NCBI GenBank assembly: GCA_964247055.1
Contig: OZ176052.1
Location: 1,736,001-1,800,000, forward strand
Source of the DNA: Paragordius varius
Lineage: Eukaryota; Animalia; Nematomorpha
Direction of reading: 5' to 3'
DNA length: 64,000 nt
Positions 162 to 63,862 of this stretch are shown in pieces (position 1 is the first letter of the stretch; the number at the start of each line of letters is the position of its first letter). A program made the translations under genes and the position numbers. The notes beneath the pieces are model-generated. The model did no database searches. It saw nothing but the letters and a program-made list of their open reading frames with translations, and had not been told where the DNA came from.

Positions 162-3100
162 CTTTAGTGTGCCCAATATAAAGACAAATGTGATACAATA
201 ATTGATTGATTGACCAATAATAATCTGGCCTTAAGAATAATGGATTTTCAGGGATTGAAATAGCTGCCCCGTTCCAACACACCATGGGTTTATCATTTGA
301 CAAACAACTATAATATTTATAAATAAACGAGGAAGTATATTTATTCTTATTAAAATTTCTCTTTAATTATAGATCTAGTTTAATATAATTTGCTTCAGGA
401 CAAAACCTAAATATATAAAGACAAAAAATTTTTTCTAAAAGACAATGATACTTCTTACATCTTGTTGATTGATTCAGAAAAAACTCATTGTTTAAATGGC
501 CAAGTGTGAAATAGAGTTATATAACACTAACACAATCTATTTTATAATTTACGATTGTGAAATAGTTAATATACAAAAATTTAAGGTTTAAAAGTATGGT
601 TGTCTTTTAAATAAAAATATTTGTCTTTATATTTTTACGCTTTGTCCGTATAATTTCAATTTTTATTGTATAAAGAACAAGTTATTTAGCCCTTATTTTT
701 GTTTTAAAGAAATCGTTATTTCTATCAAATATATCGGTAAAAACTTAATTAAAAACAACTCCAATTCAAAAAAACTTTAAAATGTAAGGAAAAAAAACAA
801 AGTACAAAAAAGTGTTGTTTAAAAACCTTTTAGTGTCACCATCATCTTTATTGTTCCGACACTTATATTGAACAGAATAAGCTTGATCACTTGAGGGAAT
901 ATTGGTGGAATATCCTTTATTTTGGCCATTCATAATAATATAATAATTGGGTAAATTATAAAGATTTGTCAGGGCTGGGCAAACGTCTTTCCTAACAAAA
1001 CATATATAATACTTTTTAAATATTTGGAAAAAAAATGAAATATAAAAATATTACACGAATATTTAATTCCAAAATGAAACTAAATTATATAAGTTAGATT
1101 ATACTTTATGGAAGGGAATTAAAATATTCATTAATCAAAGGAAATCAACATAGGTAGTAGACAGTTGAGTTTAAATAAATTTTAAGAGTACAATTTTGTG
1201 TTCAGGTATTATTGATTAGAATTTATATAAATCTATATATTTTATTTTATGTGAGGAATGATGATTTTTACCATAGAGTTTCCATTAAAACATTTGACGT
1301 ATAGATATAATTATTTTTCGTAGCCATTAAAACCGTAAGTATACCATTAAAAGCTTCAAAAACGCAGCAGAGAGCTGAATTTGACCTATAGATATATATA
1401 TATATATATATATATAATGCTTTTTTCAAAAAAAATATCGATAAAAATATGTAAAAAATTAAATTTCTAAAAAAACACTATATTGTTTTAACCTTAATTT
1501 TTACATATATTGGGGTTTGAAAATAATAAAGCAATAGGGATCTAAATTGGTAAGAGGTTAAATTTCATGCATTACAATTATAATCATATGGGTAAAATAG
1601 TAAGATAAAATCATGGATTTAAAAAATATGGTTTGCTATTTAGCTTTTACTTATATTTTTTCCTTATAACTTTAATCTTTATTTTTATTTTAAGTAAAAA
1701 CAATTCTTACAAGAAAAATATTGAAAGATCAAACAAAACAAAAAAAACGACAAACTTGGTATTATAAAATTTACAATCATCCGATACGTAAAGAATGAGT
1801 TTATCAATATTTGCCATTATTTCTAGGTGTGAATATAAATTTTTATCATTAATTTGATCAGGGGTGATGGTTTTACTAGAAAAAGAATTAATTTCCGATT
1901 GATGATATTGAATGTAAGTTTGAAACATTTGAAAGATATTAATTCTAATGCGTTTTGTAAGCTGAGTTTCGTGGGTTACCGTTTCGTACGTTTGCAATAA
2001 CAGCTAAAAATTTTAAAATAATTACCGTTTAGAGTTCAAATTTACCCTCGAATTCATATTCACCCTAAAATAAATTATGTGTTTTTTAAGATTAAAAATT
2101 GCATATATTTTTTATATTTTTAAAAAATAAATTTAAGTTAAAAATTAATTTAATACTGAAAAAATAATAAACTATGCCATAAGAATATATTTCTTATTAA
2201 TGAGCCCAATAATTTATTTTTAGGGTGAATTTAAATTGTTCAAGGGTGAATTTGATTTGCAAATGGTATATTAAAAATATTGTGTTTTCAATAATAATAA
2301 AAAATTAAGTTTTGATTTCCTACCTTATAAATTTTGATAAATTGGCCAGGATGTGTAAAATGGTGAGGGTAAAGCGTGACTATATTATGGATCAGCTAAC
2401 ATAACAAATAATTAAAATGAAATATTTTATTCGAAAATATTAATAAATACAATAAAATATCTAAGGTATCCTGCATTTATATATAAATTATATTCATATA
2501 TATAGAAAGCGCAAAATAAGCCCTATATAATAGATATATATATATATATATATATAAATCGAAAATATATTCCAATGAATACTTAAATATCCTATTATAT
2601 TTCCATTTTTAGATATTGCAATTTTATTTTGATTCCCATATCAATTACACTATTATTCACCAAATATTTATTATTATTATTATTATTAAAAGCCTCTAAA
2701 ATTGGAAAAATCAAATTGGAGAGCTTTGTAATGACAATCTCTTATGCTAAGCTTTCGTGGAAAAACAGCACTTTTAAACAAAACATCTTATGAAAATAAC
2801 ATTATTTCCAATATTTAATAACTCAAATTCTTAAATATTATCAAAAGCGATAGAAAAAAATTTTAAATCATCATTTTTTCAATCAAAATTTGTTACAATA
2901 AAAAAATAAAATAATATGTTATGTTTTAATGACAAAAAATTGATTATAATCATAGTTTTATGGAAATAATAATATAATTTATGTTTTGTTTAACACTACC
3001 CTTATTTAAAAGCAATGGGTGCTTATAATTAATAAAAAAACCTGTATTATTCGAAATTTATCGGTTATTTCTTCAACTAAACCATGCGTTAGAGCAAATG

Positions 3101-4332
3101 ACACACTCATCAAAATGTTGTTGGTGAAATCGGGAGGATAGTTTGAATCAGCTTTATTTTTTACGCCATCTATTTTTTGGTGGACAAAAAACTTTTTTTC
3201 GCTCTCCGTTTCGCCCTCTTTTACTAAAATCTAGAAAATAATATATTTTTGTTTATAATTTGTCTTTTATCAGAAAAAAACTGATTAAAAAAATTAAAAA
3301 TTTACAAATTGTAATAATTACTTCAAAACCAGTCAAAGTTATAGCCAAGGGAATATCCCTACTCTTGACCATCAAATCCAAAATTTCAATATACTTTAAT
3401 CTAGTTATATAAAAAAAATATCGTGATTGAATTGAACTGACATACTTTAAAAGTTTTTGAGATAAATCCTGCCTTTCGTGAATTATAAATAAGTTTTGAA
3501 AGCAAAAACTTTTAATATCTGATTGTATGTATAAAAAATTTTCTCAACCAATCCTATTTAATTTCCAGGCTAGATTTACAGTTAATGTATACATTATTTT
3601 TATCGGCTATATTATCAAAACATACTGATAATTATCTAAACTTAATTTTAGTTCAACACAAAATTAACTTTATTTGATCAAATCTAATTCGTATAACTAG
3701 CCAAAATAAAGTATATTACGAGATATTTAATAGTATTGAAAAAAAGGAATTATTCATTGTCCAAATTCAGAAAAATATTAATGAATTAAAAAGTCATTCA
3801 TTTATTGTTGGAGAAAGAGTTTTAGTGAGTGTATTCAGGCATATAAAATATTATTTTTGCTTAAATCATCACCAAATTTTTCTTCTAATAGGAATCTATA
3901 ATAAAAAATGTGAAAGACTGTAAAAAAAGTATACCTGATAAAATCGTAATTTCCAATTTGTGGACGACTTGTTTGAAAATCTATCGATTTTAAATAACAT
4001 AATAATAATTGAGCTAAAAATGTTAATTAACAAAAAATATAGCTTTAAATAACCATATTAATAAGATCCAAGTTAAACATTTGTTAAAAGTTTATATAAA
4101 TCTATTCAGAACCCAGAAATTTTGACAATAACTATACCAGAGGAAAATTATTAAGCCATCATAATTTAATTTTTCATAATAAAATTTATAAATGTATATT
4201 AACAATAAATTTATTTAAGGAAATTAAAAATAATCACTAATAGCTCTCTCTATCTTTTAAAAAGATAAAACTTAATGAAATTTTAACCGTTTCCTTAATA
4301 ATTATATAAATAAAAAATAAATATATTTTTAT

Positions 4333-4363
<31 letters not shown>

Positions 4364-4376
4364 TATCAAAAAAAAG

Positions 4377-4419
<43 letters not shown>

Positions 4420-4536
4420 AGGTTAATGATCGGAAGGTATAATAAAATATTTTATCAATAAAAATCAACGAATCCCACTATGTGTGACAATTTTTTATCT
4501 CTTTAAAAATATAATATATAATACCCAAACATTAAT

Positions 4537-4581
<45 letters not shown>

Positions 4582-5136
4582 ATTTTGTATAAAAAAATTT
4601 GATTTTTTCAATATGGAATATAAAAAATATAATTGGGATATATGTAAATTGATATGTATTAACCTACGTTTCCAATTGTAATTAATTTACCTAATTTTCG
4701 CATATAAAAAAATATTGTGATTTAAATACACTTTCGTTCAATATCCTTTTTTTTGATTTTATTTTAAATATCTTATTGTTCCGATTCCGTTAAATGAGGT
4801 AATTTTATCGATTAATATTTTTTTAAAAAATAACATTTTGTTTAAAAAACCTTTTTATATTAATTCAGGCGTTGAATTTGAGTCAATTTTTTGTTATAAT
4901 TATTGAATTGAGTTTATTTATACATAAAAATCAAATCATACAAATTAGTCAGCAATTATATAGAATTATCGATTATATTTGTAAAGTGATATATGAAATT
5001 TACATTACTTTAAAGTTGATAAAGTTTATCAATTATTTATATTATATATAAAATAATTATTACTTTCAATTGCTTTAAAGATATCATTTTCTGACCCAGG
5101 CAAAAATTCTAAAACTTTTTCAAAAATATCATCCAT
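162..5136 (-). CDS. ARFGEF3: ARFGEF3/BIG3-like protein, copy A (5' part only; continues beyond left edge)
   Basis: Eight phase-consistent GT-AG exons: 5136-5064, 4013-3935, 3400-3322, 3230-3042, 2003-1756, 1385-1272, 991-827, 307-162 (about 364 codons). The translation (MDDIFEKVLEFLPGS..KAIE; ETESEKK; LLQTYETVTH; ETLWKDVCPAL; YWSINQLLYHICLYIG) follows the N-terminus of vertebrate BIG3 as recalled (MEEILRKL..GSKYKAIKE; METDSDEKQ; CIETYISSCH; DLIWKNLCPAL). Confidence 0.8.
2022..2270. mobile_element. MITE family A copy (in BIG3-A intron 4)
   Basis: TIRs TA(T)ACC(A/G)TTTA.A.TTCAAATT(C/T)ACCCT ... AGGGTGAATTTGA.TTG.AAATGGTATA; seven copies in the window. Confidence 0.85.
4333..4580. repeat. Compound (TA)n microsatellites
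   Basis: Several (TA)n runs are visible here; similar runs occur at about 1391, 2533, 16259, 27317, 42335 and 44440. Confidence 0.95.
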
Positions 5137-5189
5137 TCTCCAGTTGTTTCAATGTATAGGTGGATAAACTTATTGTTTTTATTAAATAG

Positions 5190-6178
5190 GAGCATCTATC
5201 ATCAAAGAAACGCTTGACTAAAATTTTTGCCTTTTAACAGGCAATACGAAAAATCTTTCTCGAATTTTTACAGTCTCATACCTTGGGCAAAAAAATACAA
5301 TCAAAAAAATATTTTTGTGGACTTTGATTTTTTTTTGAAAAAAATGGCATTTTACGGGGGTAGCGGGTAAAAAAAGGGCATAAATTAAAAAAGTGAGTCG
5401 ACTATGTTCAGCGCGATTAAAAATAAGTAAACAAAAATCATATTTGAAATTTAATGGTCCAACACGTTCTCCAAAAAATTGACTTAACCCATTTTTCACA
5501 CGGGGTGGGCCCAAACTGGGGACCTAATTCCAAAAAAGGCCAAGCTATTGTCGGGACATTCATTAATGATTAAATTTTTTAGATGTTTGGATTTGATTGG
5601 GTTCACCGGTTTTCCGGAAACAGATTACAAAGTTATATGAAAAATCAGTTTTTAGCGGGTAGCTCCTTACCCAGCAGCTATCATCAAATAAACGGTAGAC
5701 TAAAATTTTTGCCTTTTAACAGGGAATACGTGGAATCTATATAGAATTTTTACGGTCTCATACCTAGGGCGAAAAATCGATTTAAAAAATTATTTTTGTG
5801 GACTTTGTTTTTTGAAAAAGGTGGCATTTTACGGGGGGAGCGGGTAAAAAGAGGGCCTAAATCAAAAAAGTGGCTCGGCTATGTTCGGCGCAATCGAAAA
5901 TAAGTAAACAATAATCATATTTAAAATTGAATGGTCCAACACGTTCTCCGGAAAATTGTCTCAAAGACACGATTTTTGTGGACTTCTCTTTTTTAAAAAA
6001 AACCGTTTTTCATACGGGGTGGGCCCGAACTGGGGGCCTATTTCAAAAAAAGGGCGAAGCTATTGTCGGGACATTTATTAATGATTATATTTTTTCGATA
6101 TTTGGATTTGATTGGGTCTACCGGTTTTCCTGTACCAGATCACAAAGCCAGCATTTTCCATTTTTATAAATATATAGA
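5190..6178 (-). mobile_element. Non-autonomous Helitron H1 (3'-truncated) with ~2 tandem internal units
   Basis: 5' end A|TCTATATATTTATAAAAATGG at 6178 on the minus strand; ~480-bp units restart near 5190 and 5673; near-identical to H2 over the 5' unit; no CTAG/hairpin end found. Confidence 0.75.
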
Positions 6179-6479
6179 TTAAAAGTTCAAAAAAACATGA
6201 ATATATGGGCTTTGTTTGGTTTTAATTAAGGTCTGATATTAAACTTGAAAGATTAAAAATATTTAAAAGGTAATAAATCATTATTAAACACTATTTTAAG
6301 GTCTTTATAGTGTTTTATTATATAAATCTTGGGTATTTACCAAAAAATAAAGAGGGCCCAATTAAATATTTTTCTGCACAAACATTTGTCACATATACAG
6401 ATTTTTGTTCCCATATAACTGCATCAAAACTAAATCAATAATTGAGAACAAAAGCTCTTTTAGGAGGCATATGAATATA

Positions 6480-8950: not shown

Positions 8951-9485
8951 AAATTAAAAACTTACATTTTTTTCAAATAAAACTTTATAATCATTTGATA
9001 TAGTTTTGCACGCCAGAGCGGTTAAATTCGATTATTTCAATATAATATGACATTGTTCAAATTTATTATCATCTTTGGCGCATGGTTGAAAAAAATTTAA
9101 ATATAATAAATCCTCATCGTAAACGTTTTTGCCTCCATTTTATTAAATTCTTTAGATTGTTAATACAACAGGCAAATGAATGTATATTATGGATATATAA
9201 TAAAATAATGAACTTTATAAATTTTTTGGATTACATCTAACAAACTTTTTTATCGATTTTAAATCAACTGTTTGTTTCAATCGTATTTGGAGCTATTCTT
9301 TGATTCACCGATATAGCACACATGATTGTTATTATATAATCTTAATATTTTAAATCGTCTTTTACATTTAACACCCGTCATTTGATAAACGATTAAAAAA
9401 ATGCTTCTCCGGCCTTAAGATTAAATTAATTTATAATACATAATTTATTATCTCTTTTCCAACTTTTTAGATTTATCGTTTTGTA

Positions 9486-11950
9486 ATGAGTCCCACATTA
9501 TCAATTATTACTAGTCTTTTATTGATTGTTCCCTTGTGCATGGCAGCAGATAGGGAATATTGTCCGCATAATGCAATACCCAGCATATGTAAATGTTTCC
9601 CAGACAACAATTCCACCAAAGTCATTTGTTACAATCAAAAGCATTTGGATTTACGGGCTGAATTACGCCTCTATGAGCCATTCAATATTACATATTTATT
9701 TTTGAAACTCAACCATATACCCAAAGTGGAACGGGGTTTACTCAAGAATCTACGAGTGAAAAAACTAATTTTAACCAAAAATCACATTGAGGAATTCGAT
9801 GATGACGCTTTTGAAGGTTTGGAAGACAGTTTGGAAAGCCTTAAAATTTCTGAAGATTTGACAGAAGTCGATAATAAAACTTTAGCTACAATACCTGTAA
9901 AAGCCATATCTAAATTACGAAATCTACATGATTTCCTTATACTGAGTGCCAATATAGAGGATATTCCAGACTTGGCGTTATCACATTTACCAAAGTTAAG
10001 TGAGCTATATTTCGTTACTTTCAATCTTAAAACTATACACCCACAAGCCTTCATTGGTTTAACGGGCCTTAAAAGACTATACATAGCCTCCATGAATTTG
10101 ACCAACCTGCCAAATGATATATTTGCACCACTGATCAGTTTAGAAAATTTGTATTTGTCACTCAAGGGCCTAAAAACGTACAATCAAAATGCTTTCACTT
10201 CCCTACAACGCTTGAAATACTTGAATTTGGATCAAAGTGGAATCGAAAATTTGGATAGGAATATATTCGTGAATTTGCGTAATATGAGCACTTTATCAGC
10301 CAGTAATAATAAATTGTTTGAAATCAATAATGTATTCAACCATCTACCACAACTCAGGCATTTATTCCTCTCTGATAACCGTATTATTCGGGTTCGGGAT
10401 AATGCATTCCAAAATTTACCTGCTCTTGAATACCTCGATTTAAGTAACAACAAAATTAAAGCGATCGAGGACAAAGCTTTTTACGGGACGCGGAATATAA
10501 AGTATATTTTTGCGAAAATTATCATTTTTAAAATATTTTTTTAGTTTTTTCGGAAGTTTCAATCAAAAATAAAGACTTATATATGCATTGTGCATGAAAT
10601 AATTAGCAATTTTAATTTTATACAGAATATTGAATATGAGATCCAATCATTTAGTTGAGTTACCCAGACACTTTATCAGAACTTTAAAGAATTTGACTCG
10701 CCTCTATTTAACCAAAAATTTCTTGTATCGCCTCGATAACTACATGTTTGAAGAGAATGACAAACTCTTAACGTTAGATTTATCCAATAATATTATTGAT
10801 GCCATCCTACCAAACACGTTTGATTCCTTGTCTGGGTTGGAGAAATTAGAACTTTCCGATAATTACATTTCAGAAATCCCACCGATGGCATTTGCATCTC
10901 TGCAAAATCTAAAGGAGCTCAATATAAGTCGGAATAACCTTTCAAGCTTTGATACTAATCTTGTGGCTCATACAGATGATACCTTAAAGTTCATTGGATT
11001 ATCAGGTAAAATATATAATTTATCTTAGAAATTATCATGCCAAAATTATTTTTTCATCAAGTATTGTTAAAAACCATAATTAAATGTCAAACGAACACCA
11101 TATCTTTTTAACTTTTAGATTTTGTTGCTTAGAAAGGAGCATTTTTTTCTCTTATTAACCAAAAATTTTATAAACAACTTTTTATTACACAAGTTGTGGC
11201 GTACCTCTAAATGTCTATTATATACCAAATCAACTCTCAATAAAATTTGTTTTAATTTTGGTTGAAATGCTTTTTACAAAGAATGCATATATATATCACT
11301 ATTCAGGTAACCCATGGGTGTGTGATTGTAATATGGTAAAACTACGTACATGGTATGAGCTATGGTCCTTTGAGCTAACTCACAATGAACGTTATCGTCA
11401 AGAAGAGAATATGAAAGAGGCCCGTTGCGTTTTACCCAAAACTATGGCGGGAATTCCCATTTTAGAAGCACCTTTAGATGACATTGATTGCACTAATTTC
11501 ACATCCCTCCATATTATTTCAGGCGGTCAAAGACTTACAATGGCTCAAGCTCTGGAACTTAGAAAACAGAGGCGTCAACGTGGGCGAAGCTTTAAATTGT
11601 CAAGTGATGAGAACTCTATAACTAATAGCAACAATTGTTTATCATCATACAAATTATCCGTCATAGCTATAATTTTATCGGTTTTAACCCTGGCCATATT
11701 AGTCACGAATAGCTGCCTAAGGAGTGGTACGGCCAAGGGGCCAATATCTTCTTTCCTATTATCACATGGCCATAAAAAAGGTTTTAGCAGCTCCCCATCG
11801 TCTTTTCCTTCGCTAAAATTTGCCTTCGGTCAACAGCCAATAAATAATTTCCGCGCAAACGGACACACTGATACAAACGCAACTAATCAAATTCAAACGC
11901 ATGATACAGCATCAATCACAAAAAATGAATATATTTCATCGCATGAATAA
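9486..11950 (+). CDS. Single-pass leucine-rich-repeat membrane protein (signal peptide, LRRNT, LRR array, LRRCT, TM), ~679 aa
   Basis: Exons 9486-10501, 10626-11005, 11307-11950 (phases 2 and 1 fit; 2040 nt). Hydrophobic N-terminal signal, CP..CKC..VIC cap, LxxLxLxxN repeats, GNPWVCDC LRRCT, TM segment SVIAIILSVLTLAILV. Confidence 0.92.
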
Positions 11951-12121
11951 CAAAAAATAATCAGGATAAATCACATTTCCATAAAACGGACAGGGAGAAC
12001 TAAAATTAAATATATTAGCATTTAATTAAATATATAATTATTTATTCATTCTTATAAATATATATATATATTGTATAAATATAGAGGTATACAATGAAAA
12101 ATTTGTATAGAGGTACATGAT

Positions 12122-15100: not shown

Positions 15101-17668
15101 TAAATATTTATGCCATAAATTGTCCAAAAAATATTATAGTTTTTCGAATCAAAAAAATGTGAAACAAACTTTGGTATAAATATCCCATTTCCTTCATACA
15201 AACCGGGTGCTTTAATTAGAGGACAAGATTTAATATTATGTAATTGAGCAGGGGCCACACCATTTTCCCCTTGTCTTTCAACATCGTTTTTATCATTTTG
15301 ATCTTTGGGGGAACTACCCGATGGAGGCGTAAATAAATTGTTTGTGGACCTTCGTTTACGTGAGAGCGTTAAAAATGGTTTCGATATCGAAAATTTATCC
15401 ATAAGCCCTTGAAATGATGTTCGTTTACTACGTAACTTTGAATGCTCTAAATTTACACTGTTAAACTGTTTTTTGTGGGGTGCGTGAGATGCATCATTGG
15501 TGGACGATATGGATTCATACGCTAAGCTGGAAGAGGTGTCATTATTTTCAAAATGTGTATTCCCATTTATATTTGATAAAGTATTCGCTTCAGATATTTG
15601 TGCCATCTCATTGATGGCTTTATAGGTTGGCGGCGTTAAAACTTGTTGATAAGTAGTAGAGGCGTCTGGTGGGTATGTCCTTTTAAGCACATAATTTTGA
15701 TAATTTGTAGGCAGAGACGGTGGTGATGATGGAAGGAAATTACTTAGGTTTGGGTGACCATTTAACGTTACATTCACATTCACCTGACTATTGGTCCAAT
15801 TGGGTTCATTCTCAGACCCATTAACATTGAAATTCTTATTGCGTTTGGCAGGGGAATTATCCAACTCTTCCCTATAACGTGAAAAGTTGAGAGAGATTGG
15901 AAAACGTCGAGCTTTAATGCGTTTAGTTGCATCGCGTAAACTTTTATCCTTGAGTTTAGTTATTTTGGATCCTTCACTGCGGATCCTTTCAGCAATTTTG
16001 TAATCCAAATACTCGAGTGTTGTAAAATGTTCACCCAACGAAGCTAAATCAAGCGCCGTTTTAAATTCATTATCAAGGGCCCAAAGATTTGCCCCAAATG
16101 AAACGAGGAAAGAAACACAATTGAGATGTCCATTCAAGGCTGCGTGATGAATGGCGGTTTTCCCATCTTTGTCCGTTTTTTCAATGTCACCTCTAATTAC
16201 ATATAAAAAATGGGCAATTAAAATCTTTTTAAGTAATTTTATCAGAAAATATGAGTAATATATATATATATATATATATATTGGGATGTTATAGTGAACA
16301 AATTTTGGTATTGAATAACGCAGCTTTATAAATTAGAAAAATGGTGGTAAGTTATATTGCTTCTAAAAACATCTCTTAGAATTCAGTTATCAACAAATTT
16401 TTATTTAAGAATAATGGCTAAAAGGTCCAGATAGATACCATTAGCCCAAAATTGGAGAGTGAATCCAAATGTAATAAATAGATTTTTATAAAATTATAAA
16501 TAAGTAAGTTTTTATTTTAGGTTTCATCGCCCTGAATGCAAATCCGAATATTTTAAAAGTCGTGTTATATTAAAAATTCAATTACAAATTATTTACCAAT
16601 TATAAATAATGAGGCATCTCAAATAAATTTGAAAACTTTCCAATTTTAAAAATAATTATATACGATCCTTGAATTTAACATTGATATTTTACTTTTTCAA
16701 ATTAACGCATTTAGGTTGACAAAATAGGCAGAATATAATTAAGCTCAAAAGTTGACCTATAATTCATAATTCGGCCACTCTTTATATCCACTTATATTTT
16801 TTATAAACAAAACGTTTTTATGTTTTTTGCAAAACCTATAAGACACACTGACCTTAACAAATTTGTGCAAAAATAATAGAATTATTATTGTACCAAGAAT
16901 ATACATTTCCACACTATTTATTTATTAAGAGGAATTAATATTCGGCTGATAACTTCTGCAGTTATAATATTCTTTAACCTGTTCTAAATCAAAATCACCC
17001 AAAAATGGGAATTTTTCGCATATAATATCTGCCCAAGCGTCTTTTGCGTGTGATGTCCAAATCAAAATTGGACATTTTAAAGCAATTTTATAGACAATCA
17101 AATTTTAAATGTTAATTTATTAATACTACTATTATTCTGGATCAAATAAAAAATCTATAATGAGTTTTCACAAATTTTGCTTAAAAAGTATCCAAAAAAT
17201 GTGTATAAGTGTACATTTTAATGGTTATTACATAGTGATTTAAAATTAGTCGGGTGCAAATTAAGTAAACTAAATTGGGCAAGCGCATGTCAAAGTATTT
17301 TAGCCAAGTTAAAACATTAAAGATTGGATGTACAATTTAATTTTTTTACGTAAAGCCTTCAAAAAGTTTTTTCAAGTTTAAACAGTCAATAAATGAGAGA
17401 GTCATTTACGAAAAAAAATTAGGACCATATTTTAAACATTAAAGGATTAAAAAATTCTACTTTGACATACCATAAGTTATAATATATACCCTTTTCCAAC
17501 AATCATCCTTAGGGAACTGAGATGTCCTTTATGAGCTGCCCAATGTACAGGGCTCATTCCAAAATCATCGGGTAAATTAAGGTCTCTAATGTTGGCTCTT
17601 TTGATTAGTTCGACCATATCTTCACGAGCTGCTTTATGAAATATGGTATCGTTATCAGTTTTTGTCAT
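12122..17668 (-). CDS. USH1G: USH1G/Sans (ANKS4B family) ankyrin-repeat scaffold, ~887 aa
   Basis: Exons 17668-17490, 16192-15170, 14805-13748, 12978-12828, 12374-12122 (2664 nt, phase-consistent). The N-terminus FHKAARED..DDFGMSPVHWAAHKGHL..GHLNCVSFLVSFGANLWALDN..KLKDKSLRDATKRIK matches Sans; it ends in a class I PDZ-binding motif (-TKL*). Confidence 0.85.
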
Positions 17669-21900: not shown

Positions 21901-23217
21901 GTTATTCGCCGAATATAATCGGTCTACATTTATAAACCATACCTGTATTTAGCCACTCCTCAAGAAAAATAGCATTTTTTTCAAAACTAAATCCCAATAT
22001 ATAATTTTTTAAGGCAAACATTCGCCGAAGTTATGAGACTATTGGTTTTAATTATTCCCCCATAATTTTAGGAATGTACTTCATCCACTGAGTAGGGCTT
22101 CCCATTCAGTAGAATGCCCAACATATAAAAAACGTGGCTATGCAGCAAATAATTGCGACCATAAAGATTCAATAGAGTTTTAGTTATCTATTTCAGAATA
22201 AAAATAATTATTAGCTAAACATTTTTTTAAAAGCCGATGATTGGTGCTCCATCTTCTGAAAACACCATTAAATACTACCGTCACTTTGAATCCAATTTTT
22301 GAATATAGGAGATCATGAAGACTCAATAAGAATTGCAGCTATATCCAATACAAATATAAAAATTTTATTTTTCTTAAATAAACCCCTGGTAAGATCTCTA
22401 GCCTCTGAAAATACGCCAATGTCATATAATATCGTGGCTTTAAAGCGAACTTCGGCCTAAGTTGTGAAGCTATTAAAAATTAATAATGGTTTTAGATTAT
22501 CCATAAATAAAGTAGGAAAAATTTAAGCCTCTTATGTTAATCCCTTGGTAGGTGGTCCCACTTTATATCAAATGACCATATAAAACGACGTGGCTTTGAA
22601 GCAACCTTTCGGAAAAGCTATAAAATACCTTTAAGATTCAATAAAATTACAAAAATAAAAGGGCTTGGAAAAAATTTTCAAATTTGTCAGACCTAAAAAA
22701 TTAATTAAAATATGAATCCCAAGAAAGCAGTTATGAGTTTACACGGAGAGGGTTATAGCGTGGGGTAAAAATTTTTTTGATTGTACTGTCTTTTTTGGTT
22801 TTAGGATTATGTTTGCTTTTTGAGGGGTGCATATTAAAATAAGATTGCGCCACTGGTAAAGTTCGTATTTTGCTTTATTATATTTAGCTAATGCCAACAT
22901 GTCATATTCAGTGGCGTACCGAGCATTTGCAGCGCCCGGGGCATAAAACTCTTATGGCGCCCCCCCCCCCCCCCCCCTCGTCTCCTTAAAAGCCAATAAA
23001 ACAATTTAATATAAAAAAAACGTTGCAGCCTAAACACCATGGATAAGAGAGCATCTGAAACTAAATTTATTCATATTCAAATACATACATGTAAATATTC
23101 GAATATAAATTCTATAATATGGAAATGCACATTGATTTTTGTAGCATATATTGAATTGATTTTATATTGATTTTGTAGCATGTATTGCATTGATTTTATG
23201 ATAATGGCGAATAATAA

Positions 23218-24597
23218 ACTATGTATTTATAAAAATGGAAAATGCTGGCTTTGTGATCTGGTACAGGAAAACCGGTAGACCCAATCAAATCCAAATATCG
23301 AAAAAATATAATCATTAATAAATGTCCCGACAATAGCTTCGCCCTTTTTTTGAAATAGGCCCCCAGTTCGGGCCCACCCCGTATGAAAAACGGGTTTTTT
23401 TGAAAACACAAGTCCACAAAAATCGTGTCTTTGAGACAATTTTCTGGAGAACGTGTTGGACCATTCAATTTCAAATATAATTTTTGTTTACTTATTTTCG
23501 ATTGCGCCGAACATAGTCGAGTCACTTTTTTGATTTAGGCCCTCTTTTTACCGGCTACCCCCGTAAAATGCCATTTTTTTCAAAAAACAAAGTCCACAAA
23601 AATAATTTTCTAAATCGATTTTTCGCCCTAGGTATGAGATCGGAAAAATTCAATAAAGATTCCACGTATCCCCTGTTAAAGGACAAAAATTTTAGTCAAG
23701 CATTTCTATGATGATAGCTGCTGGGTAAGGCAGCTAAAAACTGATTTTTCATGTAAATTTGTGATCTGTTTCCGGAAAACCGGTAGACCCAACAAATCCA
23801 AATATCGAAAAAATATAATCATTAATAAATGTCCCGACAATAGCTTCGCTCTTTTTTTTGAAATAGGTCCCCAGTTCGGGCCCACCCCGTGTGAAAGATG
23901 GGTTAAGTCAATTTTTTGGAGAACGTGTTGGACCATTCAATTTCAAATATACTTATTTTTGATTGCGAACATAGTCGAGTCACTTTTTTGATTTAGGCCC
24001 TCTTTTTACCCGCTACCCCCGTAAAATGCCATTTTTTTCAAAAAACAAAGTCCACAAAAATAATTTTTTAAATCGATTTTTCGTCCTAGGTACGAGACCG
24101 TAAAAATTCAAAGATTCCACGTATTCCCTGTTAAAGGGCAAAAATTTTAGTCAAGCGTTTCCATGATGATAGCTGCTGGGTAAGGCAGCTAAAAACTGAT
24201 TTTTCATGTAAATTTGTGATCTGTTTCCGGAAAACCGGCAGACCCAATCAAATCCAAATATCGAAAAAATATAATCATTAAAAAATGTCCCGACAATAGC
24301 TTCGCCCTTTTTTTGAAATAGGCCCCCAGTTTGGGCCCACCCCGTATGAAAAACGGTTTTTTTTAAAAAACAGATATCCACAAAAATCGTGTCTTTGAGT
24401 CTATTTTCCAGAGAACGTGTTAGACCATTCAATTTCAAATATGATTTTTGTTTACTTATTTTCGATTGCGCCGAACATAGTCGTCTCGCTTTTTTAATTT
24501 AGTCCCACTTTTTAACCGCTCCCCCCGTAAAATGCCATTCCTTCCCCCCCAGAAGTCCGAAGGACTTCCTCGGGCTGCGTAGCGAGATTCACGCTAG
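23218..24597 (+). mobile_element. Non-autonomous Helitron H2 with ~3 tandem internal units
   Basis: 5' (T>A)CTATGTATTTATAAAAATGG; units recur at about 23269, 23778 and 24232; 3' GAAGTCC-GAA-GGACTTC hairpin plus GGGCTGCGTAGC, then CTAG (24594-24597) followed by T. Confidence 0.85.
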
Positions 24598-46993: not shown

Positions 46994-47050
46994 CGTCCAT
47001 TGTCACGATAATTTTACAATTTAAATTTATTTTAATATATGACATTTTTT

Positions 47051-47232: not shown

Positions 47233-48629
47233 ATGGATCACTTAAATGATTCACCTAATACAAATAATAATAATTATAATAATGCAAACAATAGCAATAC
47301 CGTTAGCACTAATTCAAGTCTCATGGGCACGTCGTCGCGTCACCATGAACGGATAGATGTGATACATTTCCCTAAGCGTAATATTTCCCTATTTCCACAA
47401 CACAAAAATTATTTGGATCTATTGTTGATTATAAATACGGGTTGGATATGTCTCCTTTTAGTAGCGTGTTTTGTATGTTCTTGGACCTTTTTTGCTTTTT
47501 GGTGGTGGCTTATAACAGTGATTCATGGAGATCGTGAACTCATTGCCATGGGCAAAGAAAATCAAACTTGCTTAGGTCATGTAAGCAATTTTGCTTCCAT
47601 TTACTTGTTTTCGATTGAAACGCAACACACGATTGGATATGGATATCGATACATTAATGACACTTGTCCATTCTCAGTGGTTATTCTTATGGTTCAATGC
47701 TTAGTGGGCGTTATCATTGAATGCCTGACCACAGGGTTGCTTTTTATCAAGATTTGTTACCCTAAAAAACGGGAACAATGCATAATTTTTAGCAATAAAT
47801 GTTTGATAAATCAACGTGATGATGATTTGTATTTGGCTGTCCGTATAGCTGATACCAATAAAATATCACTCATTGATGTTAGTATTCGGGCCGAACTATT
47901 TAAACGACGTATAACACATGAGGGTGATGTTATACCCTTTTATCCCTACAACCTTACGCTGTGTAAGTACGATTTGATGGAAAGTGTTGAACGATTAAAC
48001 TTAACCCTACCCCAAATTATTATGCATTGCATTGACCGGACATCACCCATGGCAGATTTAGTCATTCGCGAAGACGATATAATCCACGAGAATTTTCAGA
48101 TTGTTTTTAGCGTTAACGGTTACTCCAAATTGTCGGGGATTCCAATCCAGGCCCAAAAATCTTATTATGCCGGTATGTGTTTTCATAATGTTAGTGAGAA
48201 GTTTTTTACCTTAATTTTAGCCATGTAATACTGATAATCTTCATATTTTTACTTTATACAGAGGATTTGATTTGGGGCCATCGTTTTGTCAATATGATTA
48301 AGGAGGGGGCACACGGGGAAGTTTACATTGATTTCCTGAATTTTCACTTGACAACACCCATAAACATTGATATTGGGCGTTATTATACCCGATGTACGGA
48401 AAGGGAGAATTTCGCAGCTCAAAGAAACGAATACAATCTGTATAATTCTTCACCAAGTCGAAATAATTTGTTAACTTCACCGGAGAATGTCGAAAGGCTG
48501 TCCATAATTATCAAGGAAAATACGGAACTACTGAAACGTTTGGGACGCGGAGACTTGCGGGTTGATAAAATGTGGCTCAACATAAACAACAATAATAGCA
48601 CCGACAATTACAACAATGATATATCATAG
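47233..48629 (+). CDS. Inward-rectifier potassium channel (Kir/KCNJ family), ~435 aa
   Basis: Exons 47233-48172 and 48262-48629 (1308 nt). M1, SIETQHTIGYGYR filter, both pore cysteines, M2, PKKR C-linker, SYYAEDLIWGHRF. Confidence 0.93.
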
Positions 48630-54800: not shown

Positions 54801-56858
54801 ATGATAAAGTCTAAAATAAATTATTTTTGACCAACATTTTGCGCACAAAATGAAACATAATATATAATTTTTCGAGAGGCATAATTTATCCAAATATTGT
54901 CTTAGTAGTTAGGAGGTTCATCCATTAAATATTTAATTATTTATTTTTTCTTTCATTTTTTTTATTAATTTCGTTATAGGGGCTTCGCAAAATATTTAGT
55001 TATTTTAGGAGATTAAACCATTTTTGTAACTAATTAAAATTATTTAACCGGTTTGTATAATGTCGATTATAAGAGTTTGATAAATTTTACTTTTGAGAAC
55101 CATATTAGAATAAGTCCTTAACAACTTGTTTTAAGTAAGTTTTAATCTTTTAAGGCTTGAACCGGTTTTGTTTTAGATATATGATAAATAACTCTAAAGA
55201 TTTCAAATTCCAATCCCTGATTTAATCTATCTATCTGTTTTTTTATACAACAATTTTTCAAATATATTTTACCCACAAACATATATTTTTACAGGTAATG
55301 TTCCCATTAACATCCCTCTAATAACTAATAATCCTTCTACCATTTCGCCTGACAAACGCAACTCAAACGTCTTTGATCTCGATTGCGTAGATGTCCAACC
55401 ATTTTTGGTTGAAGCTTACATAGCTGAGGAAACGAATGAACATTACCTTGGCCCGGCACCTACGGAACACATTGCGCGTCAAATTAAACTGTCCCGTGGG
55501 ATCAGTGGAACCAATCTAGAATACTTGATTAACTTGTGGAAAACGTTGAAAGTCATTACACCACCGGGTATTAAATTTGATCCGGATGATCATTTGACTG
55601 AACTCATCCGTTGTATAAGTCGTCTAAAATTTGTGGCAAACACATCAAATATCAACGAGCACTATAATAATTTGGGTAATATTTCACCCACGACTGCGAG
55701 AGCAGTTATGCAAGAAATTTTATCTTTGGAAACGAAAGAGTTTGTGCCTCAAAGTCAAATTTCTTCAAGCAATTTGTCAACAGAATCGCAAACAACCATA
55801 ATTGATAATGACAAAAAGAAGACATCAACGGAAAAAATGGAACAGAATGATATTGACAAAAACAATGGTAAGTTAACACATTGGAAACCTAAAAAACATA
55901 TATTTTGTGACATCTTGTTTAAGGAGGTTTAATTAGGAAACGATATGTTATTTGTTTATCTGATAATGTTTAATTTATGAGCCTTAAAAGTGATGCGCGT
56001 GAATGATTTCTTAATTTTAAGGATTTTTAATATGACCTTGTGTGTATGCATACACGTAATATTAAACATATTATATGTTTTGTTTTGGTAAAATACGCAT
56101 CATATGATCAAATTTTTTTGATAAGTCTGTTAACATTGTATTTGAGTTGTATTAAGAATATTATTAAGTGCTTAAGTAGAATATTAATACAATTTGTGGA
56201 ATAGTCTTTTAAATTGCTGAACGAACACTTGTCAATTTTTAATGTAGCAATTCTTTAATGGAGAATTTTTTAATACTAATTTGATTTGTTGTTAATGTGA
56301 ATGCAACCAAATTTTTATACATATGGAACTGAATATCTTTATAAAGATTAACTCTGTAACTACAAGTTGAAAGTATCCCTACTAATTTTATTAGTTAGTA
56401 ATGCATTGCATAATATCTATATTAACGGTAAAAAAACTATTTTGCCTCTAGAAAACATAAAGTCTTAAATTATATGTATTTTAAATTTATTAGCAACACC
56501 AAATATTCACACCAATCACCCCCAGAAACAACCAATAAATAATGATGTATTAACCAAGAAAGTCAATTATCCTGATTTAGATTTAACTAAAGATATTAAT
56601 AATAATATACCTAAAAATCCATATATAGAGGATTACAATTATAGTCCTGATAAAAAAATTTCACCCTTGCATTTAAATTATGTCAATGATAAAACTACTA
56701 TTTCTCCTACAACAATTAATGCAAATGATCTTGCCCAACAAAATCAAACACATACATATCCAAGTCCAATAAATTTATCATCAAATACACCCAGTGTGGT
56801 TGACATGAGTACTTCTCATGTCATATTTTCCTCACTACCTCACCAAAAAGTTAATTAA
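51900..56858 (+). CDS. CHAC2: ChaC glutathione-specific gamma-glutamylcyclotransferase (ChaC2-like), enlarged, ~485 aa
   Basis: Exons 51900-52034, 52061-52102, 53623-53965, 55295-55867, 56494-56858 (1458 nt). [62 protein letters not shown]. The last exon is less certain. Confidence 0.88.
52035..52060 (+). other. 26-nt spliceosomal intron (ChaC intron 1)
   Basis: GTATATTTGTATTTTTATTATTTTAG lies between the conserved DHRG..H and PGRVVTL motifs; retention frameshifts to a stop. Confidence 0.88.
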
Positions 56859-59145
56859 AGAAACAATATTAAGTTTTAATTTCCTTAAATAAAAAGTAAA
56901 AAACAAATATTTTTTGTATTGTCTAAACCCTGATATTTTAGGATTAAGCCTATATCATTTTGGGTCCTGGACATAGGGAATAGATGTAAATTGGTAGTAC
57001 ACACTGAATAATTTATTTTGCAATCGTAATCTTATAGGTATAGGTTAATAAAATATTAAGGTTTAAAAAGTTGACTTTCTTTATAAAAATATTTGTCTTT
57101 TACTTAAAATATTTTGCCTATCAAATTTTAATTTTTATTATATAAATCATCAATGCAACACATCATCTTTTTGGCATCATCGTCGTCTGAATGTATCGAT
57201 ATGTATGTTACTTATTATGTCATTAATTGAATTGAATCAAATTGATTAATACTATTTTTTGTTTTTTTCATATTTAATTGAAAACATTATTTTACCCAAA
57301 AAAGATTTGAACTTTATTTAAAGTAACATATCATTTTTAAATCCTAATTATACTTGTTAAATTATAATAATATATATCCATAAAATGTGGCATATCTATA
57401 TACATATATTCATAAAATGTGGCATATATATATACATATAAATATTATTCATTTAATATATTGTATGGCATCTATCCCCTAAATACTTACTAATCTCATT
57501 CAATAACATGATTGATTTAAAGTCAAATATAATAAATTTTATTTATTGAATGTTTAAATATGGTGTAAAGGTGTCAAGACGGAAAAGACACGGGTATTAA
57601 GGCTATAATATATATAAAAAAATAGGTTTTTACACGTTCTATGTAGTTAATTTAGAAAATTTCGCAGATTTTTTGGTTATAAAATGTCTTAAATGCTATG
57701 AGAGACATGTAAAAATTAAAATTACAGTTGTATTACAGTAGAAACAATGAATAGTAAGAAAATGTTTATCAAAAATTAAAACGGTCACTCAATACAAAAT
57801 AACAAGTGGTCAAGTATATTAGAGATTCGATAAAACTCATTAATCAATTAACAGTATTTATGTATACTTACATACTCATAGTGTAGATATTCAACCATTA
57901 CAATATGTCCTAATTTTTTAGTATTCTTTCTCTCGTCTGCTTTTTTAATTATTACCCTTTGTTATGTCCTGCTCAAACATTAAATTTTTATTTTCAATTA
58001 TCATATTAAAAATTTTGCTTTTTCATTTTTTGTTTCAACTGTATATGGTAAAAATAATATTATACTGACAAAATGTAAAAATACAGGGCAAATATTAAAC
58101 GCTGTACTTTTCTTTAAATTGCGAAGTTAGAAATAGATATTTATATATTTTACATTCGAAATTAAAATAATTTATATAGGAAATATTAAAATTCAAAAAG
58201 TATGGCTGTCTTTAAAAAGAAATTGTTAATACCAAATGAAAAACTACTTAGCAATAGTTAATTTTTCACCGTTAAAGGATATTTATCCTGATGACAGTGG
58301 TGGCAAAAAATGAACCCAATTATTTTAACGAAAATAATGGCCAGAATTAAACTTAAAAGGGGCATTTCAAAACATTTAATTTAAAACCGTTTATATGTTT
58401 AAATGCAACTGCCCCAAAATCGATAGAAATTTCGAATTCAATCTCAAAAACATATTTTTCATTAATGGGAGTACCAATTTTATTTTATAAAGCTGATCAT
58501 ACAATTTAGCCTTACCCGCACATCTATGGATATTAAATTTCATATTAACAGTGGAATTATTCCCCTGGCAAAACACATATAATAAAAAAATTACACCATA
58601 AAGATATATAGTTTTAAGCTTTTAAATTTCATGAGATGAAGCATAAAAATTTATACTGGTTATTAAGTGTAATATGCCGCTCATTGAACAATAATTATAA
58701 AAACATATTGTTTTTTTAATCAAAATTAGTCAAAGTTTAAAATTTTCCAAATATGCCATCCGTATATAAAAATTTTTTAAATATTTACAATTAATTATCA
58801 TGCAAATACCAAGTTAAGCACAACCGGATTTTTTTAAAATATACCTATAAAGTTTAAAAAAATAAAAGCTTTTGGACGCTATGTAAAATTTTATTGATAC
58901 TTTCTATATTATAACTTCTAAATAAATCATTGAATTTATGAGTGTTGTGTAATGATAGCTGGACATAATTGCTTGTGGGAATTTGGCATATATGGTTTAC
59001 TTCATTGTTATCCGCTTCAATCCACTCTCATAGCTTCGATTAAACACTTTCATCGGACTATGTAAAAAAATATGATATAAAAATATATTTCTTAGTTCAA
59101 TGTTGAAATGGCTTATGTTTATTTCGATAAAATATGAGATATACA

Positions 59146-59374
59146 TACCATTTACAGTTTAACTAAAAATAGATTGTGTTTTTTAAGATTTAAAACTACT
59201 CATATTTTTATATATTTAAAAAAATTGAGAAATTTATATAATACTGAAAAAATAATAAACTATGCCATAAAGGTATATTTCATATTCATGCTGATATCTC
59301 AACCCAAACACATTAAATTTATTTTTGGGTGAATTTGAATTGTTTAAGAGTGAATTTGAAGTGTAAATGGGATA
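59146..59374. mobile_element. MITE family A copy (intergenic)
   Basis: TACCATTTACAGTT ... GAGTGAATTTGAAGTGTAAATGG; internal sequence matches other copies. Confidence 0.75.
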
Positions 59375-60629
59375 CAAGCGCATTAATTTATCCCAACACA
59401 TTTAAAATTGTTTATCTATAAATGTTAGAACTAAATCCGATTTTGAATATTTAAAACTTATCCATCTCATTATTTGTGAGATAATTATTGTAGAAGACTT
59501 TTAATTTTATCTAATTTTAACTGGAATACCTATATACTTTTAAGTGGATTGAGTTTTTTTAAAAAATTTACAATGAAGTGCTTATCATAACTTGCAATGA
59601 AAAAGAGTGTCACATTTATTTCATAATCAGCCAAGGTTTCTCGGAAAGTTGTCTTTGGAATTTGTGAGAAACCATATGGACCAATCTTCCGTAGTAAGGG
59701 AAAACAAACATGATCTATTATTGATCGTCACCTTATTTTTGCAAATTATTAGATTAACTATATATATTATAATCGAAAAAACGCTAAAAAAATTTTTTAA
59801 ATCTAAATGAGCAATGTTTTCATTAAAACAGAGTATTTTTAGGCAAACTCCACTGATTTTTAACAAAAATATTATTGCAACCTCAACTGGTTCTGGGATC
59901 CCAGGCACATAAAAAACTCGGTAAGTTTTAACATGGAAAAACCGCTAACCATTTTCACTTCGATCCGTATTCCACACCAAAAAGGGGGAAGTCAAATATA
60001 TTTGTGGATCTTATTAAAATACAATATGACAAAATTAAAAATATAAAACATTTTTTTTAAAAATTACATTTTTAGTTTTGGATTTTTCTCTACAAAAACT
60101 AACTTATAATTTTAAAATACCAATCCCCAGTCAAAAAGGATATAATTGAATAAATTAAGTTTTAGACATATGGTTGGCTTTTGTAAAATATATTTGCCTT
60201 TATTTAACGATTTGTATGTATATTATCAATTTTAACTGGTTAAAATACAATGCTTTATTACTTAACAGGTAACAGTTTACATTAAAAATTACTTTAATGG
60301 ACATTTTTGAAAATATTAATTTTAACCATCAATGAATAAGAAGGATAACCGTAAAAAAAATTAAAAACTGCTTTTTTTATGCAGACAAAAAAAGTTAATT
60401 TATTTCGCCGATTAGCCAAATCTAAATATTGGCCATTATTTTTATATAATCAATACACTTCTAAATGACCTTATAGTGTTTAATAATTCAATACCACTAA
60501 AATATTTAAAAACTTATAAGTTTTATATCAGACATTAATTAAAACTAAACCAAGTCCTATATATTTATGTTTTTTAAACATTTTGATAAAAACATAAGTT
60601 TATCACCTACGCACTGAAACGACTGAGAA

Positions 60630-63600
60630 ATGGATGATATTTTTAAAAAAGTTTTGGAGTTGTTGCCTGGGTCAGATAGTGTTATTTTTAAAGCAATAGA
60701 AAGTAACTATTATTTTATATCTAATATAAATATTTTATTTGATAACTTCATCTGCTTATATTAAATTTTGTATATCACTTCTGAATAATTATAATCGATA
60801 ATTGTATATAATTGGTGTCCAATTTTTATGATTTGTTTTGATGTAGAATTATATTTGCTTCAATAATAATAACAAACACATTTAACTCAAATTCAACGCA
60901 AAAATAAATTTGAAAATGCTTTAAAACAAAATGCCTTTTTAAAAAAAATTAATCGTTAAAATTTCCTCAATTAACATAATTGAAATAATAACATATTTAA
61001 AATAAAATTGAAAAGGATATTGAACAAAAGTGTATTTAAATCACATTTTTTTTGTATTCGAAAATTAGGTAAGTTAATAATTGGGAACTTATGTTAATAG
61101 ATATCAATTTAAATCTCGCTTACCTCCTTTGCAAGGAGAAAATAGCGTATAAAGGTGATATAATAAAATATTTTATTATACCTTCTGATCATATATATGT
61201 ATTGAAATCTTTTTTTGATTATTTTATATAAAAAATAAATTTTTTTATTTATAAAATTATTAAATAAACGGTGTAAATTTCATTTAGTTTTATTTTTAAA
61301 GATAGAGAGAGCTATTAGTGATTTTTTTAATTTCCTTACATAGCTACATTAAATTTATTGTTAATATAGATTTATAAATTTTATTGATTTATATATGGTG
61401 GTTAATTTTAAAATAAATTAAATTAATGACTTAATAATAATTTTCCTCTGGTATAATAATTGTCAAATATTTTGTGTGGATTTCGAATATTTATATATAT
61501 ATGTATTCGGTCGAACTGATACACTTTTAATAATTTAACTTGGATCTTATGAATATAGTTATATAAAACTTTTTGTCAATTAACATTTTTTCAATTATCA
61601 TTATGTTATTTAAATACGATAGATTTTCAAACAAGTCGTCCACAAATTGGGAATTATGATTTTATCAGGTACTTTTTATACAGCCTTTAAAGCACATTAT
61701 GGAATCTTATTAGAGTGAAAATTTGGTTAATTATGATTTAAGCAAAAATAACATTTTATATGCCTGAATACACTGACAATAAAACTCTTTCTCCAACAAT
61801 AAATGAATGACTTTTTAAGTCATTAATATTTTTTCTGCTTTTTGACAATGAATAATTCCCTTTTTCCAATACAATTAAATACCTCTTAATATACTTTATT
61901 TTGGCTAGTTATACTAATTATATTTAATCAAATAAAGTATTTTGTGTTAAAATAAAATTAAGTTTAGATAATTATCTGTATGTATTCACAATAATATAGA
62001 TAATAAAAATAATGTAGATACAATTAAAACTGTAAATTTAGCCTGGAAATTAAATAGGATTGGTTGAGAAAAATTTTTATACATACAATCAGATATTAAA
62101 AGTTTTCGCTTTTAAAACTTATTTTGAATTCACAAAAGACAGGATTTATCTCAAAAACTTTTAAAGTATGTCAGTGCAATTCAAACACGATATTTTTTTT
62201 ATATAACTAGATTAAAGTATATTGAAATTTTGGATTTGATGGTCAAGGGTGGGGATATTCCTTTAGCTATTACTTTGACTGGTTTTGAAGTAATTATTAA
62301 CATTACAATTTTTAATTTCCAAAAATTTTTTTTCAATAAAAGACAAATTATAAATGGAAAATGTGTCGCAAAATATTTATATTATTTCATAGATTTTAGT
62401 AAGAGAGGGCGAAACAGACAGCGAAAAAAAGCTTTTTGTCCACCAAAAAATAGATGGCGTAAAAACTAAAAGTGATTCAAGCTGTCCTCCCGATTTCTCC
62501 AACAACATTTTGATGAGTTTGTTATTTGCTCTAACGCATGGTTTAGTTGAAGAAATAACCGATAAATTTCGAATAATACAGGTTTTTTTTATTAATTATA
62601 AGCACCCATTGCTTTTAAATAAGGGTAGTGTTAAACAAAATAAAAATTATTATTATTTCCATAAAATTATGATTAATAATCAATTTTTTGTTATTCAAAC
62701 ATAACATATTATTTTATTTTTTTATTGTAACAAATTTTGATTGAAAAAATGATGATTTAGAATTTTTTTCTATCGCTTTTGATAATATTTAAGAATTTGA
62801 GTCATTAAATATTGGAAATAATGTTATTCTCATAAGATGTTTTGTTTAAAAGTGCTGTTTTTCCACGAAAGCTTAGCATAAGAGATTGTCATTACAAAGC
62901 TGTCCACCTTATTTGTTTTTTCCAATTTTAAAGGCTTTTATTAAAAATAATAATAAATATTTGGATATAAGTGTAATTGATAGGGGAATCAAATAAAATC
63001 ACTATATCTAAAAATGGAAATATAGTAGGATATTTAGGCATTCATTGGAATATATTTTCGATTTATATATATATTTATATATATATATATATTGTATAGG
63101 GCTTATTTTGCGCTTTCGATATATATATAAATGCAGATACCTTAGATATTTTATTGTATTTATTAATATTTTCTGTTAAAATAAATCATTTTATATATTT
63201 GTCATGTTAGCTTATCCATAATATAGCCACGCTTTACCCTCACCATTTTACACATCCTGGCCAATTTATCAAAATATATAAGGTAGGTTAACTAATTTTT
63301 TTAAATTTTTTTAAGTAAATAATATTTTTGTATAATATTTTATACCGTTTGCAAATATTCATTGACAATTCAAATTCACCCTAAAAATAAATACATTTGG
63401 CTCATTAATAAGAAATATATTCTTTTAGCATAGTTTATTATTTTTTCCGTATTAAATTAATTTTTAACTTAAATTTATTTTTTAAAAATATAAAAAAAAT
63501 ATGCAATTTTTAATCTTAAAAAACACATAATTTATTTTAGGGTGAATATGAATTTTCGGAAGGGTAAATTTGAACTGTAAATGGTATATATTTTAAAATT

Positions 63601-63862
63601 TTTAGCTGTTATTGCAAACGTACGAAACGGTGACCCACGAAACGCAACTTACAAAACGCATTAGAATTAATATCTTTCAAATGTTTCAAACTTACATTCA
63701 TTTTTATCATCAATTTTTGGAAAATGAATTTCATTCTAACGCAACTAATAATACCCCTGATCAAATTGATGATAAAAATTTATATTCACACCTCGAAATA
63801 ATGGCAAATATTGATAAACTCATTCTTTACGTATCGGATGATTGTAAATTTTATAATACCAA
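60630..63862 (+). CDS. ARFGEF3: ARFGEF3/BIG3-like protein, copy B (first five exons; continues beyond right edge)
   Basis: Exons 60630-60702, 61623-61668 (via downstream AG), 62211-62289, 62393-62581, 63606-63862; no stop codons; synonymous changes and an in-frame 9-nt indel relative to copy A. Confidence 0.72.
63341..63588. mobile_element. MITE family A copy (BIG3-B intron 4, same position as 2022-2270)
   Basis: Ends about 18 bp before the exon-5 acceptor, as in copy A, in the same relative orientation. Confidence 0.85.

Follow-up and report, generated by a model that had tools for sequence, protein, structure and literature searches.

Two inverted arms at the ends of a 64,000-nucleotide stretch of the genome of Paragordius varius (Nematomorpha; GenBank assembly GCA_964247055.1, contig OZ176052.1, here C3, positions 1736001–1800000; the whole stretch is referred to as the window) are, with good confidence, the 5′ ends of two adjacent genes in a lineage-specific tandem array of divergent genes resembling BIG3 (ARFGEF3). 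The array comprises seven full units, two on the minus strand and five on the plus strand, plus one partial unit, and occupies about 315 kb of C3 (1.66–1.98 Mb) in an assembly of 110.6 Mb (44 contigs, ~25% G+C). An initial annotation of the window had seen either a retained pair of BIG3 paralogues or the footprint of an inversion of the gene block that lies between the arms. This structural reading is wrong in scale: the pair are two neighbouring members of seven, here called U2 and U3, and the window contains the turning point between them at which the array changes direction. The gene amplification is lineage-specific.

The inverted homology of the window ends is confirmed by blastn, by a repeat search and by a check of frames and splice sites. 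Comparison of the window ends by blastn gives three inverted matches: 1638–4338 with 63989–61225 (85.4% identity over 2,837 columns, including 208 gap positions), 4642–5186 with 61114–60582 (79.6%) and, beyond a 1-kb stretch inserted into the left copy, 6190–6326 with 60575–60441 (80.1%). The repeat search recovers the same two arms at 81–97%. Overall, the arms span 1638–5186 (gene on the minus strand) and 60582–63989 (gene on the plus strand), are 80–85% identical and are rich in insertions and deletions (indels). The two genes stand head to head and point outwards, the left copy being read from an ATG at 5136 and the right copy from an ATG at 60630, and open frames and AG/GT splice sites are retained in exons 1–8 of the former and exons 1–5 of the latter. 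Exons and introns are shared, as is an intronic element that occupies equivalent positions in U2 (2051–2258) and U3 (63360–63583). Because it has terminal inverted repeats of 20–27 nucleotides and is scattered over the genome in more than 100 copies, this element is similar to a miniature inverted-repeat transposable element, and its earlier designation as such is upheld.

The homology between the arms overruns both window ends and spans an entire unit of ~29 kb. Self-comparison of C3:1660001–1920000 (260 kb) reveals full units of this length, each with a spacer of 5–10 kb, repeated along the contig. The 3.5-kb right arm matches seven sites on C3 (1.70–1.95 Mb) at 83–85% identity and, as a whole, has no match elsewhere in the genome. 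The start codons are located at 1706981 (U1) and 1741136 (U2, the left copy of the window) on the minus strand, and at 1796630 (U3, the right copy), 1833625 (U4), 1874010 (U5), 1912517 (U6) and about 1947.3 kb (U7, estimated from the right-arm match) on the plus strand, with an ATG-to-ATG period of 34.2–40.4 kb; the last unit terminates near 1,975,100. Exactly seven copies of the 3′ part of the gene, of exon 9 and of exon 31 are present in the genome, free of stops and with 93–100% amino-acid identity. At the turning point the two sides are unequal. U3 keeps the usual 2.1-kb upstream spacer (58482–60629, plus strand), which is common to U1 and U4–U7, whereas on the U2 side the array homology ends ~190 bp upstream of the ATG, at window position 6326 (the 1-kb insertion excluded).

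That the array is an artefact of uncollapsed haplotypes or of a misassembled repeat is scarcely conceivable: the seven copies are distinct and 8–17% divergent, carry copy-specific insertions and indels, and all belong to a single 14.4-Mb contig, in which the spacers are ordered and the unit lengths differ. The initial annotation had argued for an old, real duplication rather than a haplotype artefact, and this holds, with introns that differ by 13–17%, many indels, copy-specific insertions and retained frames. In its head-to-tail units, shared spacers, star-like burst, partial terminal unit and internal orientation switch, the array resembles other lineage-specific tandem arrays that arise by unequal crossing-over. 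It differs from them in its unusually large unit (34–40 kb, ~34 exons) and in the nature of the amplified gene, which would be a housekeeping-type trafficking scaffold and not a receptor, defence or detoxification gene.

Several smaller repeats accompany the array. A partial copy at 1660481–1669812, matching 1673563–1682604, consists of the last 3.5 kb of the array (a non-coding tail) and 5.8 kb of downstream flank, and part of that flank recurs in inverted orientation 60 kb to the left, at C3:1610719–1614094, in a neighbourhood rich in segmental duplications. Every unit tail contains a degenerate internal tandem repeat of ~1.4 kb (for example, C3:1821379–1822822 and C3:1713658–1715326). The upstream spacer of U4 alone carries a dispersed repeat of ~0.9 kb (C3:1832220–1833153), of which at least 35 copies at 75–85% identity are found on many contigs.

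Gene integrity and divergence of the copies

We aligned the five complete units (U1–U5) and applied our own comparative gene-finder, which gives credit for open frames, for synonymous differences and for splice sites that the copies have in common. On the sense strand it returned 35 exons (5,922 nucleotides, score 266) and chose, unprompted, the same ATG as the earlier reader of the sequence, compared with 1,389 nucleotides (score 56) on the antisense strand and 636 nucleotides (score 17) for a column-shuffled alignment. For 28 of the 35 exons the frame is kept and stop-free in all five copies, with length differences that are multiples of three, and exons 1–8 are intact, with AG/GT retained in nearly all of the seven copies. 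We place the end of the gene after exon 34 because a stop (...FKMIIVN*) is conserved there in all five copies; AATAAA-like signals follow. The gene is thus ~23 kb long; its 34 exons amount to at least 1,958 codons. Exon 35 of the model was rejected, as the conserved stop precedes it and it falls in the unit tail. Exons 11 and 25 of the model are doubtful, and the model probably makes exon 5 too short and misses acidic and Asn-rich exons in the middle of the gene.

Rates of substitution were compared between exons and introns. Across 1,636 codons, the non-synonymous divergence (dN) is ~0.037 and the synonymous divergence (dS) 0.10–0.145, with dN/dS between 0.27 and 0.33 in all 10 pairs, and intron divergence (K) is 0.13–0.165. 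When only private changes are counted, dN/dS (ω) is 0.24–0.40 on each of five branches, including that of U2, which has lost its upstream spacer. Because frames, splice sites and the stop are retained and dN/dS is near 0.3 on each branch, the copies look like working genes, and in having seven units with intact frames and splice sites and a dN/dS of ~0.3 the locus has the properties of a tandem array of functional paralogues. Some observations weigh against this. U2 is without the 2-kb upstream region that is common to the other six units. Single-base deletions in short T/A homopolymers interrupt exon 17 of U5 (~C3:1886470) and exon 25 of U2 (~C3:1723246), and could be real frameshifts or assembly errors. 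The estimates of ω are biased downwards, the gene model having been selected in part on the contrast between synonymous and non-synonymous changes; the evidence from frames, splice sites and indels is independent of that bias. In exon 25 of U2, an alternative donor and acceptor pair rescues the frame.

Trees of the copies are almost star-like (terminal branches of 0.055–0.09 and internal branches of at most 0.008), and this shape shows that the unit was amplified in a short, old burst, after which the copies diverged by 8–17%. The minus-strand copies, U1 and U2, are not sisters, and U2 pairs with U4; the two orientations therefore did not expand separately. Over the first 12 kb of aligned sequence, U1, U2 and U4 are split from U3 and U5 with 100/100 support. 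Within alignment columns 9000–12000 (U2 at ~C3:1731500–1734300), the same two groups appear as sequence types that are ~0.22 apart, with distances of ~0.09–0.16 within each type, a pattern suggestive of gene conversion or of a unit that has long existed in two types.

The window itself contains the first eight exons of U2, on the minus strand, and the first five of U3, on the plus strand, as placed by the gene model and the seven-copy comparison. In U2, exon 1 (5064–5136, with the ATG at 5136) has its ATG and GT donor conserved in all seven copies. Exon 2 (3935–3980) encodes an identical peptide and has AG/GT in five of the seven copies, the donor being ambiguous in the alignment for U3 and U5. 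Exon 3 (3322–3400) would form a DCB-like helix and is followed by exon 4 (2324–2395). The model ends exon 5 at 1927, and indels in multiples of three suggest an extension to a GTAAAT donor at 1775 (1775–2003). Then come exon 6 (1272–1385), exon 7 (827–991), which carries a WK[DN]xCPAL motif read against human BIG3, and exon 8 (162–307); the gene runs left past the window to a stop at C3:1717980. In U3, exons 1–5 are at 60630–60702 (ATG at 60630), 61623–61668, 62211–62289, 63211–63282 and, in the long form of exon 5, 63606–63843, and the gene runs right past the window to ~C3:1818760.

Resemblance to BIG3/ARFGEF3

The array genes are most probably divergent homologues of ARFGEF3/BIG3, as judged by comparison of their predicted exons with the human protein (Q5TH69, 2,177 amino acids). 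For this comparison we took the human BIG3 sequence from Additional files 1 and 2 of a published study (PMC4096751), in which residues 1–582 are aligned and residues 1–1988 are given residue by residue. The exons were compared with it by eye, so that no alignment statistic stands behind the match counts. About ten matches are colinear, the exon order following the residue order of human BIG3 over 1,800 residues. In the N-terminal part, exon 1 corresponds to human residues 1–23, exon 3 to ~50–75, exon 5 to 145–167 (TY..H..R..QM), exon 6 to ~200–215 (SLC...VLTVL), the exon 6/7 junction to 257–273 (IWKNLCPAL versus LWKDVCPAL, 7 of 17 positions) and exons 8/9 to 318–365. The IWKNLCPAL segment has no counterpart in BIG1 or BIG2 within residues 1–582, the sole part for which the published alignment includes these proteins. 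Further along, exon 12 corresponds to residues 695–707 (EVDTALQNFASTF versus EIDLALIKFSSQF, 7 of 13) and exon 13 to 728–745 (8 of 18). Read more widely, the same two exons match residues 672–709 and 725–748 by eye, within the Sec7 region of the human protein (592–798). They are followed by exons 18/19 at 1011–1016 (WPHVFR versus WSHVFR, 5 of 6), exon 22 at 1198–1207 (RPLLHVMRCW versus RPLIQIMNVW, 5 of 10) and two segments of exon 31, at 1774–1796 (FDTSPGLKCLLKK versus FDRRPGLKFLLKR, 11 of 23) and 1805–1821 (NLYR..., 7 of 17). Past residue 1988 the C-terminal part may resemble BIG3 as well, which we take as a lead and not as evidence.

The case for BIG3 is made because these ~10 matches come in the right order and the protein is similar in length. 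The model gives a protein of the expected kind, predicted to be largely α-helical and in the region of 2,000–2,200 amino acids (at least 1,958 codons versus 2,177 amino acids in the human protein). The segments that match by eye also run in parallel, from the DCB-like N terminus of the human protein through its degenerate Sec7-like region (672–748) to its C-terminal helical region (1774–1821), and motifs of BIG3 type occur where BIG1 and BIG2 differ. Pfam assigns two domains, Sec7 and DUF1981, to human BIG3, and mammalian BIG3 is without the catalytic Sec7 motif (PMC4096751). The human Sec7 domain, which Pfam or SMART recognizes, is degenerate and has lost the glutamate of FRLPGE. No canonical Sec7 signature was detected in single exons or six-frame translations of the array genes, which fits a degenerate, non-catalytic Sec7 domain (PMC4096751). 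The DCB region is common to BIG3, BIG1, GBF1 and MON2, and BIG3 and MON2 have been described as related and without guanine-nucleotide exchange activity (PMC4956616). The array genes share a DCB-like N terminus and a long α-helical body with BIG1 and BIG2 (ARFGEF1/2), GBF1 and MON2; unlike these, they are unrecognized by the corresponding Pfam models and match BIG3-specific motifs instead. They differ from human BIG3 in being very divergent, rich in Asn, Lys and Ile and interrupted by low-complexity inserts, and in that the Pfam domains Sec7 and DUF1981 (Sec7-like_HDS) are not detected in them exon by exon.

The points that weigh against a BIG3 identity come mainly from profile searches. Family searches were run on single exons or open reading frames, a procedure in which a DUF1981 domain would be split between short exons. 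Pfam gave no match for 30 peptides (the ten longest open reading frames and 20 model exons), and did recognize exons of neighbouring genes. When the genome was searched in six frames with Sec7, Sec7-like_HDS, DCB, Sec7-like_HUS and Mon2_C, nothing in the array matched, and the loci recovered were BIG1/2-like (C1:10.48 Mb), GBF1-like (C1:11.42 Mb) and Mon2-like (C5:11.79 Mb). A sequence search of the PDB with profiles of exons 24, 26 and 31 returned nothing, the ESM Atlas gave no meaningful match for exon 9, and hmmsearch with an exon 24 profile found 0 matches among 1.84 billion proteins. By a BLOSUM62 estimate made by hand, the best segment alone is borderline significant and the others fall below it. 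The region of the human DUF1981 domain (PF09324, 1246–1303) appears shortened in the model: its flanks (human 1198–1207 and 1295–1304) are present, but ~42 amino acids lie where the human protein has ~90.

Given these blank searches, the array could instead be an orphan, lineage-specific family of helical proteins unrelated to BIG3, with motif matches that arose by chance. Such a family could also look as exon 26 does in an AlphaFold prediction, which is all-helical and of low confidence (predicted local distance difference test score of 48). We consider this improbable. About ten matches keep to the residue order of human BIG3 over a length of 1,800 residues, several of them fall on rare residues (W, C, P, H and M) and on motifs that BIG1 and BIG2 lack in the published alignment, and the protein is similar in size to human BIG3. 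Moreover, the genome yielded BIG1/2-, GBF1- and Mon2-like genes but no other BIG3 candidate. The assignment to BIG3/ARFGEF3 made in the initial annotation is therefore probably right as regards the colinear BIG3-type motifs seen by eye, although every single-exon profile search was blank. According to that annotation BIG3 is usually a single-copy gene; seven tandem copies are present here.

The change of direction and the intervening block

Amplification of the unit would have occurred by unequal crossing-over. One further rearrangement would then have set two units head to head across a 52-kb block, with only ~190 bp of upstream spacer; it would have been a partial inversion of the array or a segmental duplication in inverted orientation. 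The proposal of the initial annotation was different: a staggered-break inversion of the 55-kb block, leaving a short inverted duplication at each breakpoint. The two arms are indeed inverted and do bracket the block. We nevertheless regard this proposal as extremely improbable, and abandon it, because the homology is that of the full ~29-kb unit and its spacer, extending past both window ends, and there are five further copies of the unit in direct orientation. The duplication is accordingly not confined to the breakpoints of an inversion, and the direct array continues on both sides. The arms are also complete gene 5′ ends under purifying selection, and they end asymmetrically, with ~190 bp of spacer on the left versus 2.1 kb on the right.

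That part of an array with originally uniform orientation was inverted, for example the stretch from the block through U7 or else the pair U1 and U2 and the adjoining flank, is possible, though we hold it with some doubt. Such an inversion agrees with the relationships of the minus-strand copies, neither of which has the other as its nearest relative (U2 groups with U4, and U1, U2 and U4 are separated from U3 and U5 with full support in the first 12 kb), and with the normal array spacer that connects U1 and U2. The simplest inversion predicts an orphan spacer after the last plus-strand unit, but none was found after U7, nor was a copy of the flank that lies downstream of U1 found there; in a near-star tree, the groupings carry little weight and may be products of gene conversion. 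Under an inverted segmental duplication, which seems to us rather unlikely, a reversed copy of a U4-like unit would have arisen 52 kb upstream and undergone one more round of duplication. In its favour, the 5′ part of U2 is nearest to that of U4 (94/98 support), as is its 3′ tail (distance of 0.058, 100/99), the U2 copy begins abruptly ~190 bp upstream of its ATG, and other inverted and partial segmental copies occur in the region. Against it, the 5′ tree does not group U1 with U2, and the divergence between these two is as great as that of any other pair.

The block between the head-to-head units (6327–58481, ~52 kb) lies outside the array, as delimited by self-comparison, and contains unrelated genes that were identified by Pfam. 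These encode a leucine-rich-repeat protein (9486–10541, plus strand), an ankyrin-repeat protein (15103–16137, minus strand), an inward-rectifier K+ (Kir) channel with IRK and IRK_C in one exon (47233–48225, plus strand) and ChaC (55405–55929, plus strand). On its left the block adjoins the final remnant of the U2 upstream spacer (6190–6326, minus strand), as placed by blastn. Between this remnant and the gene lies the repeat-rich 1-kb insertion (5190–6190), which is 54 bp upstream of the U2 ATG and missing from the other units. This insertion is composed of sub-repeats of ~100–400 bp, and it has inverted relatives within the 52-kb block, at 23215–24539 and 28120–28466. Together, the insertion and the truncation of the spacer may have removed the normal U2 promoter.

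Implications of the amplification

BIG3 is a little-understood, catalytically inactive member of the Sec7 family and is related to the Arf exchange factors of the Golgi. Mammalian BIG3 binds Rab2-GTP and has been linked to the biogenesis of secretory granules (PMC6639074). By analogy, the seven proteins would be α-helical scaffolds that act in post-Golgi or secretory-granule traffic, and the retention of seven copies could reflect dosage, or specialization by tissue or by stage. We tentatively propose that the sole BIG3/ARFGEF3 gene became seven intact and individually selected paralogues, a rare amplification of a giant, non-catalytic scaffold of the Sec7 family. Such an amplification would imply specialized secretory-granule or post-Golgi pathways, and the head-to-head 29-kb repeats could allow the 52-kb block to invert by recombination.

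Tandem expansion is itself a known kind of event, and the interest here lies in how large the amplified gene is and what kind of gene it is. For annotation, the locus offers two lessons: what appears to be an inverted duplication around a block of genes is the turning point of a 315-kb array, and, in so divergent a genome, profile searches at the level of exons can overlook a real member of a family. If the proposal is true, seven copies in a small, AT-rich genome constitute a natural experiment. Positions that are fixed across the seven paralogues and human BIG3 would be candidate functional surfaces, and copy-specific expression could reveal which secretory processes use BIG3.

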